Shown here: positions 19,851 through 49,897 of the stretch, piece after piece
Position numbering within the stretch: the stretch's first letter is position 1
How the letters are laid out: the number at the start of each line of letters is the position of its first letter
Sequence record: LC727695.1
Direction: 5' to 3' (one strand)
Length of the DNA stretch: 64,000 nucleotides
The notes under the pieces: generated by a model
What the model was told of the DNA's origin: nothing
The model's database searches: none
The model's input: the letters and a program-made list of their open reading frames with translations, nothing else
Position numbers and translations under genes: made by a program

Positions 19851-20339
19851 TTAAACCGATGAATCTATCCACGGTGGATAAACAACCACAATCTGGTTAG
19901 GCATGTGATTAGACCAATCTTCAATGATAGTTCTAACATCAGAGAAATCTAATCCACCATTAGCACACCCTAGAGGTGGTATGATAATTTTCCAATCTGG
20001 ATGAATACAGTCTTCTTCATTTTCCGCAGAATCCGATACGTTCTCCATCATCCACTCTAGACCACGTTCAATGAAACTAATTTGAGATGGGTTCCGCCAG
20101 TTATCCTTAGTAGGAAACATCATGAAACGTTTACCATCGGATGCTTTGTAAATAACCGGATTACCAATAGTAATAATTCTCTTTTTGCAATCGTGTTTGT
20201 ATCTTTCAAAAAGTTCAGGATACTTTTCTTTAAACGATTTGGCTAAACCAGCGCCCATGACGCCAACAACATTAACAGTGATTAGATAAAGATCACCAGG
20301 TACATTGAATATATCTTTACCTATAATAAATTCAGCCAT
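19851..20339 (-). CDS. Stand-alone macrodomain ADP-ribosylhydrolase, DarG/Poa1p-like (gp104-like)
   Basis: TVNVVGVMGAGLAKSFKEKYP, FPTKDNWRNPS and IPPLGCANGGL are hallmark DarG-type macrodomain motifs. Confidence 0.88.
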   Translation of the reverse strand: MAEFIIGKDIFNVPGDLYLITVNVVGVMGAGLAKSFKEKYPELFERYKHDCKKRIITIGNPVIYKASDGKRFMMFPTKDNWRNPSQISFIERGLEWMMENVSDSAENEEDCIHPDWKIIIPPLGCANGGLDFSDVRTIIEDWSNHMPNQIVVVYPPWIDSSV

Positions 20340-23402: not shown

Positions 23403-26458
<3,056 letters not shown>

Positions 26459-45994: not shown

Positions 45995-47509
45995 ATGTTT
46001 GAGTTATTGTTGTCTTCTGGACTAACAAATACGCCTATATATTCCGATCCTTATCCAGGTCCTAAAACACTGATAGCTGGGACAAGGGAATTAGGTTTGT
46101 ATGGTGAAACAACATCTTCAGAATTATTTGGTTATGATGATGCAGCTAAATTAGTTAATATGACATTTGGAACAGTAATCAATGATGGACAACCATGGTT
46201 AAAGTTCTCTAATAAAAATGTTACTTGTTACATACCAAAGAAACCAGCTCGTAAATCAATACAAAAATCACGGCTTAATAATGCCGGACTCCGTAATGGT
46301 GACTATGAAGTTAGATTTATGGGGAACATTTATAAATTTGGTTTATTAACAATGGCTGGTGCCACATCAGAATGGCAAAGGTTACTTTATAATGTTCACG
46401 TATCTAATTTAAATGGTGCTAACTGGCCTTATAAATTTACAGATAATGACTTAGGTATTAACCAAGCGGTCGCTGGTGGTATTAGCACTGATGGTACTAC
46501 TAACTGGGGAAGAGACCCAGGTAGTGATCCAGTTAATGACCAGCTCTATCGTGGCTACTATGCGATTGATATAACTAGCTCGTCAAGTAGTGAAACGGGT
46601 GCTGCAACCCAAGGTTGGCGTCCAGTGGTTTATGCTAGTGGTACATATCCATTCGTTAAAGATAATGTTATTAAACTTACTGATTTTGAAACTGATAACG
46701 AAATGGCAGCAGGTGCCCAAATAGGTAACTTAGTCTATTATTACGGTGGTAAGAATAATGCTAATACTGCTCTACGTACACTGAATTTAGTCACGGGTAA
46801 GTTAACAACATTACAACCAACTGGTACGCCTATAGCAGTTAAACAATGCTCGGCTGTTGCATTTAATGGTAAAGTATATTTCTATGGTGGTGAAAGTGCC
46901 ACAGATGGTGTACTTACTAAAGATATGCAGTGTTATGATCCTGCAACTAATACATGGGAAATAAAATCACCAGGCACGATAGCTTGCCGGTATGCACGTG
47001 GAACTAGTCTTAATGGGTTAATCTACATATTAGGTGCAGCTGATACAACTGCGACAAATAATCGTGGATTTACATTAATGTACAATCCAACTACAGATAC
47101 ATATACCAGTGGTGCAGCATTTAATGATACTGGGGAATATACCCAAGATTATTCAGTGAGTATTTATAATAATAGCGTATGCGTTATTGGTGGTACGGTT
47201 GGTGCTGGTGTTAATACTGGAATCATATCGTACAATCAAACCAACAATAATTGGTCCAAACCAATAACTACAGGTATACCTCTTGGTGCAGCTATTAATA
47301 TACGCCCATCTGGTGAACTTTATGTAATCGCTGGTGAAAATCAAAATAACGCACCAATTAAGTATTATGAACCACGATTAGCACGATGGATAAATTTAGG
47401 TAATTTAGAAACTGGTTTAGTGGATGCAGGTTTTGCCAATACGTTTAATAATGACGGTAAGATTTATGTTCTAAACGGTAATCAGAATTTAAAATACCAA
47501 ATTAGTTAA
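45995..47509 (+). CDS. Virion-type protein with a C-terminal six-blade Kelch beta-propeller (gp83-like)
   Basis: Repeats LVYYYGG, KVYFYGG, LIYILGA, VCVIGG, LYVIAG and IYVLNG with Kelch spacing. Confidence 0.8.
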   Translation: MFELLLSSGLTNTPIYSDPYPGPKTLIAGTRELGLYGETTSSELFGYDDAAKLVNMTFGTVINDGQPWLKFSNKNVTCYIPKKPARKSIQKSRLNNAGLRNGDYEVRFMGNIYKFGLLTMAGATSEWQRLLYNVHVSNLNGANWPYKFTDNDLGINQAVAGGISTDGTTNWGRDPGSDPVNDQLYRGYYAIDITSSSSSETGAATQGWRPVVYASGTYPFVKDNVIKLTDFETDNEMAAGAQIGNLVYYYGGKNNANTALRTLNLVTGKLTTLQPTGTPIAVKQCSAVAFNGKVYFYGGESATDGVLTKDMQCYDPATNTWEIKSPGTIACRYARGTSLNGLIYILGAADTTATNNRGFTLMYNPTTDTYTSGAAFNDTGEYTQDYSVSIYNNSVCVIGGTVGAGVNTGIISYNQTNNNWSKPITTGIPLGAAINIRPSGELYVIAGENQNNAPIKYYEPRLARWINLGNLETGLVDAGFANTFNNDGKIYVLNGNQNLKYQIS

Positions 47510-47515
47510 CGAAAT

Positions 47516-47540
47516 AAACCCTCCCGTAATGGGAGGGTTT
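47516..47540. terminator. Bidirectional terminator
   Basis: AAACCCTCCC-gtaat-GGGAGGGTTT. Confidence 0.85.
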
Positions 47541-47612
47541 TATGATGTGTCGAAGTTTATGTTAGCAGTAATGATCAATTGATAATATTTAATTAGGAAT
47601 ACCTTCCATTTT

Positions 47613-47981
47613 TTAATATCCTTCATTAAGTAGTTCTGCTAGAGCACGTGCCTGTGAAATATCAGTAGAAGCAAAAACATCAGAAAGATAGTTATCATGT
47701 TCTTTTGCATTCTGACGCAATTCATCCATTAGATGTTTATTAGATACCGCCCATACTTTCCACAGATTTTTATAATCATCATATTTGGGATTATACCCGT
47801 CTAGTGGTGGTTTTCCTTTACCAGCTTTCCAATGGTTGGAGTATATGCGATATCCTTTACAATCTAACTGCCAAGCTTCCTCAATTGTTCTGCCATCAGG
47901 AAGCCTTGCGTAAAGAGCCGAGAATCTTTTGTCACCAACAGATGAACATTCATATCCTCCTCGGCGCTTCCACTGATATAT
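47613..47981 (-). CDS. Unannotated 122 aa protein, possibly NADAR-like, with ATA at the expected start (non-canonical start or recent pseudogene)
   Basis: Open frame (M)YQWKRRGGYECSSVGDKRFSALYARLPDGRTIEEAWQLDCKGY...SQARALAELLNEGY*. The first codon overlaps the upstream TAA as TAATA instead of the usual TAATG. Confidence 0.65.
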   Translation of the reverse strand: MYQWKRRGGYECSSVGDKRFSALYARLPDGRTIEEAWQLDCKGYRIYSNHWKAGKGKPPLDGYNPKYDDYKNLWKVWAVSNKHLMDELRQNAKEHDNYLSDVFASTDISQARALAELLNEGY

Positions 47982-49897
47982 TACTTTGGGTTCTTATAGG
48001 TATTAATAAACTTCTCTAGCAGGGTGTCCATTTTAGGAGCACCCATGATCTTCTGTGTGATTTCAATAGCATTAACCCTACCACCTGTTAAGTTTACGCC
48101 AACTTCACGGCGATGGTGTTCACTAATTCCTTCCATCATTGAGAATTCCATCACACATGTTTCACGTGCAATATTTAGAATCTGACTAACGTTAGGATAT
48201 GTCGACACGATGTCAAGGTCGGCGATATGACAGAAGATTAAGGTTTTATAATTCGGTAAATCTTTAACACACTGCAATCCATTTGGACCTGCCATGTATG
48301 ATGGTAGTGTAACAATCCAATCATTATGGCCAATAACATATTGATCAAGTTCATGCACCATCTGATCTGAACTTGAACCAATGACACATGGCTCTGGTCT
48401 ATTCAAATACCAGAAGTGCATATCGTCACATAGTCGTTTTGGGTTAGAACTAAAGTTCTTATAGTCAGATGCCTTAGAGAATAGACTTATAGAGCGACCA
48501 AGGTCATTTACTTGTTCATCAAGTTGTTCTAGTCGAATGGAGTCGATGATGTTATAAAGACCATATTTGATTTTATGCTTAGTCTGCATCTCACGGTGCC
48601 AATCGATACCACCAAGATGTGCAGTTTCTTTAAAGGTTAACTTACCAAATTCCATTACATATCTAATAGAATCACCATAGGTAAAGTTATCATTTAATAT
48701 AAAATCATCCACCGGTACCCATTCATTACTACCTACATTTTTAATATATTTAGTAATAACGCCGCCTGGTCGGTCAACTAGTTGTTTATTAAAACCTTCA
48801 ATAAAATCTTCTAAGTCCTTATCATTTTTAATGGTCGTGGATTTATCGATGTTTAGTTCTTTTCTAAGAATAGACTCTAACCGATAGTTAGGATCACGTC
48901 CTTTAGCTAATCGAGTTACTCGATAAGTTGACATAGAATCGATACATTGAAAACTAGAGGGTGCTGTAATCCAATGCCATTGATCCTCCGGTCCTTTAGA
49001 TTTAGTGACCCCAGATGCAGTGGTGGTCATAGGTTCATCAATCTTAAAATGGAAATACCTATAATTCTTAGGTACCGATGGATCAGAAAAAACATCAGCT
49101 GGATTAACACCATAGTGTTCTAATGTTTTTAAGATTCTACCAATGTCGAAGCTAATATTCCAGAATGCGAAGAAATCTGGTTTCCAGGTATGTAGTCGTT
49201 TAAAACATTCAATAATAATATCTACTGGTGTTTCAACAACCATTACTTCAATATCTAGACCACGTTCTTTAATTAGATGTGATAATACCTCTTCTTTTTG
49301 TGCTTGTTCTAATGTCTCTTTCACTGGATCTTCAATATCACTAACCCATCGTTTTAAATAGGCTAAGAAAGCTTTGTTCTTATGTGTAACTGACATACAG
49401 ATAATCTGACCATCGTTCTCAGCTTCATAAACGTTGGTTTCGATGTCACCGCCAGCAACAGTGTTTAGAGAGATTAGACCAGGATAACGTTCTTGATAAT
49501 CATGCTTCAGATAACAGGTTGAACTAACATCACTGCCATATAGGTAAGGACTACGCGCTAGTTGACGAAGAGATCTAGCCGAATAGTCACCTAGGATTTT
49601 ACTAATCTTACGTTTCATATCAATTTGAGTTGACATGTATTTAACTAAGTTACGCTCATATTCGTAATCTTTCTTTTCTTTATGGTTACGCATTCCTTTT
49701 GAGGTAATCCAAAAAGGACGCTGGTAGTTTTCCCACATCCTTAAATTATTTGCAGTTGTACCATCTTCAAAATGAATTCGTTCTTTAACGAAATGCGCAT
49801 CTGTAAACTTACCAAATTGATCAGTACAATAAGTAATATGTTTGGCTTCAATGCCCTTAATCTTTTTCTTATTTGTAACCTGTTGTTCATTAGACAT
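47981..49897 (-). CDS. Split family B DNA polymerase subunit: 3'-5' exonuclease plus motif A (gp82-like)
   Basis: ExoI GDIET, ExoII FWNISFDI, ExoIII YNIIDS and polymerase motif A DIVSTYP are present. Motifs B and C are absent. Confidence 0.85.
   Translation of the reverse strand: MSNEQQVTNKKKIKGIEAKHITYCTDQFGKFTDAHFVKERIHFEDGTTANNLRMWENYQRPFWITSKGMRNHKEKKDYEYERNLVKYMSTQIDMKRKISKILGDYSARSLRQLARSPYLYGSDVSSTCYLKHDYQERYPGLISLNTVAGGDIETNVYEAENDGQIICMSVTHKNKAFLAYLKRWVSDIEDPVKETLEQAQKEEVLSHLIKERGLDIEVMVVETPVDIIIECFKRLHTWKPDFFAFWNISFDIGRILKTLEHYGVNPADVFSDPSVPKNYRYFHFKIDEPMTTTASGVTKSKGPEDQWHWITAPSSFQCIDSMSTYRVTRLAKGRDPNYRLESILRKELNIDKSTTIKNDKDLEDFIEGFNKQLVDRPGGVITKYIKNVGSNEWVPVDDFILNDNFTYGDSIRYVMEFGKLTFKETAHLGGIDWHREMQTKHKIKYGLYNIIDSIRLEQLDEQVNDLGRSISLFSKASDYKNFSSNPKRLCDDMHFWYLNRPEPCVIGSSSDQMVHELDQYVIGHNDWIVTLPSYMAGPNGLQCVKDLPNYKTLIFCHIADLDIVSTYPNVSQILNIARETCVMEFSMMEGISEHHRREVGVNLTGGRVNAIEITQKIMGAPKMDTLLEKFINTYKNPK

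Follow-up and report, generated by a model that had tools for sequence, protein, structure and literature searches.

We analysed a window of 64,000 nucleotides from sequence record LC727695.1, which derives from a phiKZ-type Pseudomonas jumbo phage, and describe here a start-less open frame that lies on its minus strand between the DNA polymerase gene and a terminator-like hairpin (Table 1). The proteins of the window are about 99% identical to their phiKZ counterparts and 801 bases are 100% identical to PA7, SL2 and many others, with OMKO1 among the matching phiKZ-like records. The polymerase open reading frame (ORF) matches the phrog_3011 DNA polymerase family (E value 1.2e-241) and is 99% identical to the annotated PHIKZ082 of phiKZ; polymerases of this gp82 type form a divergent family B clade typical of the phiKZ-like group (PMC7824862). 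The polymerase gene ends in AAC CCA AAG TAA, and the start-less frame, which is its -1 frame, overlaps this stop codon through an ATA codon, as TAATA. Read from stop to stop, the frame opens at 47993, and its first ATG, GTG or TTG is an ATG at 47729, in codon 85. An earlier note on this stretch had drawn attention to an open frame filling the gap between polymerase and terminator, to its TAATA overlap, to TAATG overlaps elsewhere (at 24812, 36759 and 57416, all on the minus strand) and to several peptide motifs in its translation, all of which we find in the sequence.

Table 1. Features discussed in the text, in window positions.
Feature	Position	Strand	Description	Basis
DNA polymerase gene	47981..49897	-	phiKZ gp82 type, divergent family B; 638 codons, zero frame	ORF list
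Slippery heptamer C_CCA_AAG	47984..47990	-	proposed -1 shift site; polymerase frame reads ..C CCA AAG	sequence
Polymerase stop codon TAA	47981..47983	-	directly 3' of the heptamer; possible stimulator of the shift	
NADAR-like open frame	47613..47981	-	ATA (47981-47979) to TAA (47615-47613); 122 sense codons and stop	
-1 frame part of the proposed trans-frame protein	47613..47984	-	GTA (Val), ATA (Ile), 121 more codons, stop TAA (47615-47613)	family match, AlphaFold model, selection
ATA codon	47979..47981	-	aligned with the start Met of free-standing homologues; here read as internal Ile	alignment
Motif T-I-E-E-A-W-Q-L-D-C-K-G	47853..47888	-	residues 32-43; candidate active site at the first helix	invariant columns, model
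Invariant Asp101	47679..47681	-	just after strand 98-100; candidate third catalytic acid	alignment and model
38-residue ORF	47613..47729	-	phiKZ PHIKZ082.1; C-terminal third of the domain only	ORF list, annotated records
Out-of-frame 29-codon ORF	47864..47953	-	3' of GGAGG; judged spurious	annotated in some records
Intrinsic-terminator-like hairpin	47516..47540	-	closes the polymerase transcription unit	hairpin prediction; RNA-derived contig spans polymerase gene to 47514
Macrodomain ORF	19851..20339	-	162 residues; AdfM (phiKZ gp104) type	Pfam Macro, 30.1 bits

The start-less frame is a real and strongly conserved coding sequence, since it matches a phage protein family over its full length, has numerous homologues and evolves under purifying selection. 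The family, phrog_9995, comprises proteins of 124 residues of unknown function and has no Pfam entry; the match covers profile positions 2-123 of 124 (E value 1.8e-55). A word-based search retrieved at least 500 homologues, which are mostly free-standing proteins of 120-130 residues with a methionine where the window has ATA, and all 29 residues that are invariant in their alignment are intact in the window frame. Comparison with the domain of PhiPA3 gives a ratio of nonsynonymous to synonymous substitution rates (dN/dS) of 0.026. Between pairs of start-less lineages, nonsynonymous differences per site (pN) range from 0.07 to 0.34 and synonymous differences (pS) from 0.52 to 0.89, the latter being saturated in most pairs. 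With nonsynonymous difference overall at 0.06-0.34 per site against 0.5-0.89 at synonymous sites, the domain is under strong purifying selection, and its frame contains no stop codon or frameshift in any of 47 phiKZ-like genomes.

The same records bear on the nature of the ATA codon, for which the earlier note had considered a sequencing error or a strain-specific knock-down. The 61 bases of the junction are identical in 42 of the 47 phiKZ-like records; the other five differ by one base, and phiKZ's own difference lies elsewhere. Four studies provide RNA-derived contigs, which are colinear with the DNA and unchanged at 47979-47990. Because the junction is shared among these records and RNA contigs, a sequencing error at 47979 can be rejected, and the ATA is not a lesion peculiar to one strain.

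Current annotations capture only fragments of this coding sequence. In the phiKZ-like GenBank records that we inspected (L001, L092 and L093 in our numbering of loci), the 38-residue fragment is annotated, and several also carry the 29-codon ORF. The former corresponds to phrog_33573 (38 residues), which matches residues 89-126 of the stop-to-stop frame, that is, domain residues 85-122; phrog_33573 and PHIKZ082.1 are artefacts of calling the first ATG within the domain. The 29-codon ORF, which the earlier note had listed as a competitor, does exist, and we reject it as a gene: its ATG is missing in PhiPA3, the ORF is not conserved, selection acts on the other frame, and the GGAGG that precedes it merely encodes a conserved Gly-Gly pair. 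Neither the annotated records that we read nor any paper found in searches on frameshifting in phiKZ or chimalliviruses, on PHIKZ082.1 or on Ribo-seq describes a fused polymerase-domain product, and gp82 goes unmentioned in the Grad-seq supplements.

Immediately upstream of the polymerase stop lies the heptamer C_CCA_AAG, which in the zero frame follows the X_XXY_YYZ rule and permits tRNA re-pairing, and which is the sole in-frame X_XXA_AAG in the entire polymerase gene of the window. Our comparison took in about 30 junctions of polymerase and domain, drawn from GenBank phages, IMG/VR and metagenomes. Nearly all start-less relatives among them enter the domain either from an in-frame C_CCA_AAG, G_GGA_AAG or A_AAA_AAG or through a single in-frame TAG. 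All three heptamers are named as highly shift-prone in Escherichia coli (Atkins review, PMC5009743). In each of the 11 start-less loci of the -1 type, a single in-frame X_XXA_AAG marks the junction, and the -1 frame runs on from it into the domain without a stop; only two further in-frame copies occur in the 6,475 polymerase codons of these 11 loci (13 in all), and the chance of finding one in the junction window is 0.1-2% per locus. The heptamer is kept in at least nine divergent lineages despite a variable residue before the proline. This residue may be Asn, Pro, Ser, Leu, Val or Ala in front of Pro-Lys, and its codon is always NNC; given x-Pro-Lys, NNC CCA AAG has a probability of about 0.02 per lineage under the codon usage of the window. 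In one lineage (L015) the proline codon CCA has become the glycine codon GGA and the preceding wobble base has changed from C to G, which yields G_GGA_AAG. The stop codon directly follows the heptamer in 10 of 12 junctions of the C and G types, the exceptions being 201phi2-1, where it comes one codon later, and the in-frame variant L097. In the A-type clade (Noxifer, L019, L020, L022, L037, L055 and L124), A_AAA_AAG stands 10-33 codons before the polymerase stop, there is no start codon, the -1 frame again leads uninterrupted into the domain, and the polymerase reading frame ends only past the conserved N-terminus of the domain.

Other relatives bring the two coding sequences together by different genetic means. 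Three lineages (L067/L068, L084 and L149), none of them sister to another on the domain tree, have the domain in frame after a single TAG. A genetic code with recoded TAG was considered for L084 and rejected, as this is the single TAG in 726 codons, with no other in its 600-codon polymerase. On a metagenome contig from a relative of 201phi2-1 (L097, positions 2400-2560), an extra C in the C-run of the slip site creates one ORF of 836 codons whose junction sequence equals that of the predicted trans-frame product. The AlphaFold model of this one-frame fusion is uninformative on docking (predicted template modelling score, pTM, 0.48; predicted local distance difference test, pLDDT, below 50 in the C-terminal half of the polymerase). 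Finally, a length-tolerant search found, in unrelated phages, a single ORF of 885 residues (P0246) whose residues 1-120 are the domain, fused directly to a family A DNA polymerase (phrog_17, E value 1.8e-87), and P0243 is a similar fusion. From the frameshift, TAG and direct-fusion cases together, it follows that several genetic routes have linked the domain with replicative polymerases, which belong to two unrelated families.

All these observations suggest that the domain most likely reaches a fraction of the polymerase molecules as a C-terminal tail, through a -1 slip rather than from ATA. Most ribosomes on the polymerase mRNA would terminate at the TAA and release the polymerase of 638 residues. 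Some would slip back by one base on C_CCA_AAG, where the Pro-tRNA would exchange its pairing with CCA for CCC and the Lys-tRNA its pairing with AAG for AAA; GTA, ATA and 121 further codons would then be read. The result would be a polymerase of 761 residues with the 122-residue domain tethered to its variable C-terminal tail. We infer here the occurrence and rate of the slip, as well as the substrate of the domain and its entry into the phage nucleus. Transcriptional slippage was also considered and rejected: the runs are only C3A3 or A6, and the RNA-derived contigs, a form of data that hides rare variants, carry no indel. As a side observation, AAAAAAG occurs five times in the window, counting both strands, against about 23 expected from base composition, and CCCAAAG twice against about five, with TTTAAAG not depleted (34 against about 22), which suggests that the window avoids those heptamers that slip most readily.

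Several points speak against a programmed frameshift. We found no conserved stimulatory RNA structure, RNAalifold giving -8 kcal/mol without covariation on eight junctions of the C and G types, and no upstream Shine-Dalgarno-like element at the junction. In single-sequence folds, the RNA downstream of the heptamer in the window is not significantly stable (z -0.6 to -1.8); five relatives have a GGAGGA/UCCUCC hairpin 17 nucleotides downstream (-17.6 to -19.5 kcal/mol), whose counterpart in the window is weak. A possible stimulator, and the only candidate shared by the C- and G-type lineages, is the adjacent stop codon, and frameshift efficiency may be low because no conserved stimulator was found. 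L097 may be a natural hard-wired fusion or, alternatively, a homopolymer assembly error. Some relatives have a canonical start at or beside the ATA position (ATG in PhiPA3; GTG in 201phi2-1, Viktualia, PS119XW and L098; overlapping starts in L101 and L168), and in phiKZ ATA itself could give rise to small amounts of free protein. The Tepukevirus-like clade, which is likewise among the lineages with a canonical domain start, has the domain in the +1 frame and lacks the heptamer. The free domain is evidently functional too, and fusion is a preferred and not an obligatory arrangement. In the Tepukevirus-like junctions (L007 RVTF4, L008 Psa21, L106, L109, L118 and L128), the domain overlaps the polymerase end by 20 nucleotides after a conserved GAAAAGAAG. 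Its first codon there is mostly GTG or TTG, with CTG in L128 and TCG in L118/L119, which lack a start nearby. This clade might rely on weak initiation or on a shift of -2 or +1 at the A-run.

The predicted structure of the domain gives a clue to what it does. The AlphaFold model (pLDDT 96.5, pTM 0.89) has the alpha+beta fold of NADAR proteins, with core helices and small beta hairpins at the sides. In a VIA-align comparison against 48,161 chains, the best matches were the three solved NADAR representatives: that of Geobacter lovleyi (8bat; Z 8.9, 112 of 122 residues aligned, root-mean-square deviation (rmsd) 2.9), E. coli YbiA (2b3w; Z 7.3, 110 residues, rmsd 3.3) and that of Phytophthora (8bau; Z 6.9, 109 residues, rmsd 3.1). 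The next-best chain is unrelated (Z 3.5), and these three are the only chains with Z of at least 2 among the 127 returned by Foldseek. Foldseek itself ranks 8bat first in the PDB (E value 0.14, probability 0.89), and weak hits to viral models include a surplus of NADAR and DUF4326 proteins. The comparison with NADAR and YbiA that the earlier note had proposed thus finds a NADAR-like fold in the predicted model.

NADAR catalysis relies on a Glu and a Lys seven residues apart and on a later acidic residue, these being E88, K95 and D171/E173 in the E. coli C7 NADAR (PMC11543638). The domain resembles the known NADARs (DarG1-type antitoxins, YbiA and AdfN of T4-like phages; PMC11543638, PMC11825919) in its overall fold and in its SLOG and DUF4326 partners, and may resemble them also in a Glu that opens the first helix, with aromatic-Gln and Lys behind it, and in an acidic residue after a late strand. 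Its invariant polar residues are E11, D17, R19, E34, Q38, D40, K42, D101 and Q110, and E34, Q38, D40 and K42 lie on or at the end of helix 33-41 in the alignment and model. Judging from their identical order, E34 and K42 would be equivalent to the NADAR Glu and Lys; Asp101 may likewise represent the late acidic residue, judging only from the order of secondary-structure elements. The domain differs from NADARs in several respects: it shows no detectable sequence homology to them, it has about 122 residues against 150-230, and its N-terminal Y-E-C-S-S-x-G-D-x-R-F-S-A block is the family's own.

Other results argue against membership in the family. The Gln-Lys spacing is four, one residue longer than the three of the NADAR motif. 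Neither the window protein nor 47 family members match Pfam NADAR (PF08719) at E values up to 1. Aligning the family with the YbiA family in hhalign gives a probability of 0.13, both alignments being shallow (effective number of sequences about 2.3), and a meaningless result in global mode. No NADAR turns up when PDB sequences are searched with the family profile, an NCBIfam search gives no match for the domain, a protein atlas search gives no usable one, and the nearest whole phage record (G001) contains no NADAR at E values up to 10, and no canonical one. Weak matches to DUF488-N3i on two polyvalent-protein copies were dropped, as they were not reproduced in the 47 family members. The resemblance to NADAR proposed in the earlier note therefore stands for the fold, to which the three NADAR structures are the only clear matches, and for the fusion partners, and fails for sequence membership in the Pfam, hhalign and PDB profile searches. 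We class the domain as NADAR-like for its fold and, probably, its chemistry, and not as a demonstrated member of the Pfam family.

The best explanation of these data, and one that we consider fairly likely, is that the domain is made by programmed -1 frameshifting as a tail of the polymerase and has a NADAR-type glycohydrolase role. Alternatively, it could be a separate protein that begins at ATA, through weak non-canonical initiation or reinitiation at the overlapping TAA, the heptamer being incidental. The methionine of the free-standing homologues falls at exactly this position, PhiPA3 has an ATG there in a TAATG overlap, and TAATG coupling is used elsewhere in the window. Beyond these cases, the codon is GTG in 201phi2-1, Viktualia, RVTF4 and L098, TTG in Psa21, and ATA in phiKZ and PS119XW, the latter with a GTG one codon upstream, so that several relatives offer GTG or TTG at or beside the position. 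Yet it is ACA in HPP-Temi and L012, ACT in L014, GTT in L015 and GTA in Phabio, none of which has another start in the open stretch, while their domains remain under strong purifying selection. Because the position varies so widely, the ATA behaves as an ordinary sense codon, and because non-start codons occur there under such selection, the start at ATA that the earlier note had entertained is unlikely. ATA is, besides, a very poor initiator in bacteria. In the A_AAA_AAG lineages reinitiation after termination cannot make the domain, because the domain starts upstream of the polymerase stop, and an incidental heptamer would leave its conservation at synonymous positions and its covariation unaccounted for. 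It is far less probable still that the frame is a decaying and unexpressed remnant that has lost its start in phiKZ. The lack of a canonical start would suit a remnant, as would the fact that annotators find only fragments, but all invariant residues are intact, none of the 47 phiKZ-like genomes breaks the frame, and selection, already strong against PhiPA3, is equally strong among the start-less lineages.

A further alternative concerns function alone and shares the translation mechanism of frameshifting. The fusion would be made, but the substrate of the domain would be soluble ADP-ribose derivatives or some other modified nucleotide, much as YbiA acts on riboflavin intermediates, or the domain would be a part of the replicase that has no catalytic role and is accessory or binds DNA. 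We take this to be a substantial possibility, if not the one we favour. Sequence-level membership in the NADAR family fails, and the domain is about 40 residues shorter than NADARs. Most phage NADARs have been argued to target soluble ADP-ribose derivatives (Iyer et al., PMC9503650), and NADAR enzymes have several substrates (PMC12945103). Repeated fusion to two unrelated polymerase families could also reflect a role in replication. Against these points, the pattern of invariant polar residues speaks for an enzyme, chemistry on nucleotides or bases is indicated by the fusions with SLOG, DUF4326 and an AlkB-like base-repair oxygenase, and a tether to the polymerase suits a template-bound substrate better than a soluble one.

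Returning to the glycohydrolase reading, the domain would most likely hydrolyse an N-glycosidic ribosyl linkage, as its modelled fold and candidate active site suggest, and ADP-ribose on a DNA base would be the leading candidate substrate; de-ADP-ribosylation of DNA may thus be its activity. With the replicase as its carrier, it would gain access to the phage nucleus and work at the replication fork. The window also encodes the macrodomain protein at 19851 that the earlier note had recognized. Removal of thymine-linked ADP-ribose from phage DNA by the anti-DarTG2 protein AdfM (phiKZ gp104) requires import of this protein into the phage nucleus (PMC13309987). It is tempting to suggest, if only tentatively and as a rather doubtful extension of the argument, that a minority of the phiKZ replicase carries a frameshift-made DNA de-ADP-ribosylase which passes the selective import of the phage nucleus as part of the polymerase and clears, at the fork, guanine-linked (DarT1-type) or similar base adducts that would otherwise stall replication, complementing the clearance of thymine adducts by AdfM. 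AdfM, to which the macrodomain ORF of the window is homologous, nevertheless has an unrelated fold, is free-standing with its own start, is proven on thymine-linked ADP-ribose and is imported alone (PMC13309987).

The proposed arrangement recalls several known systems. In related retroviral lineages, -1 frameshifting and in-frame stop readthrough replace each other in making the same extended Gag-Pol product. Here, similarly, three TAG lineages sit among A_AAA_AAG lineages; the retroviral cases concern eukaryotic viruses in which the extension is the polymerase itself, whereas here it is an add-on to the polymerase. The copA gene of E. coli frameshifts on C_CCA_AAG, the same heptamer as in the window. 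The G/GT tail chaperones of lambda-type phages, with G_GGA_AAG, share their heptamer with junctions described here and resemble them in that the signal is kept across divergent phages while the flanking protein drifts. Both G/GT and copA involve other genes and roles, with no polymerase and no enzyme domain added to one. A parallel within a replication gene is the E. coli dnaX gene, where a programmed -1 frameshift at A_AAA_AAG in the replicase gene yields tau and gamma (PMC5009743). As in dnaX, a -1 slip on X_XXA_AAG in a replication gene would give two products in a set ratio, and the heptamer of the A-type relatives is identical. In dnaX, by contrast, slipping shortens the protein, with a Shine-Dalgarno-like element upstream and a hairpin downstream as its drivers; here it would occur at the very end of the gene and add a whole domain, with no such stimulator found except the adjacent stop. 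RNA-virus polyproteins with NADAR or Macro domains beside the RNA polymerase (PMC9503650) also tie a domain of the ADP-ribose-processing type physically to a replicase, but they are polyproteins of eukaryotic RNA viruses and not products of recoding in a DNA phage.

Beyond polymerases, the domain occurs in giant virion or polyvalent proteins and in smaller fusions, together with SLOG domains (cpYpsA, YAcAr and DprA-like), DUF4326, DUF7831 and an AlkB-like oxygenase; SLOG and DUF4326 are partners described for phage NADARs (PMC9503650). It lies inside very long ORFs, with more than 950 codons on either side, in L030, L034, L040-L042, L044, L047, L048, L052, L053, L056, L062, L066, L073 and L086. 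These long ORFs match giant virion proteins (phrog_16227, 4,401 residues) or virion RNA polymerase-like proteins (phrog_2206), and the domain stands in them beside SLOG, DUF7831 or AlkB-like domains. In those phages it is probably injected with the DNA.

Two observations concern the polymerase transcription unit itself. In several relatives the polymerase gene is split by an intervening sequence at one common place, after a conserved D-L-D motif (L002:932-1290 in PhiPA3, about 1727-2150 in L067, and L010:1-700 in HPP-Temi). An HNH endonuclease gene is annotated inside that of HPP-Temi, and the element looks like a mobile intron; the polymerase gene of the window is uninterrupted. At the other end of the unit, a Nanopore cDNA contig of the plus strand has its 3' end at 47543, with an added poly(A) run, which fits a two-way terminator common to the polymerase unit and the convergent virion gene at 45995..47509.

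The polymerase gene of phiKZ, the model nucleus-forming phage, thus appears to encode a second, longer product. For the evolution of recoding, this single gene junction offers a case in which three heptamers, stop readthrough, direct fusion and plain starts interchange. The domain also belongs to a large and uncharacterised family of NADAR-shaped phage proteins, members of which turn up repeatedly on polymerases and within giant virion proteins that are probably injected. Finally, its proposed tether provides a directly testable idea of how an enzyme may reach phage DNA inside the phage nucleus and how replication may cope with ADP-ribosylated templates.

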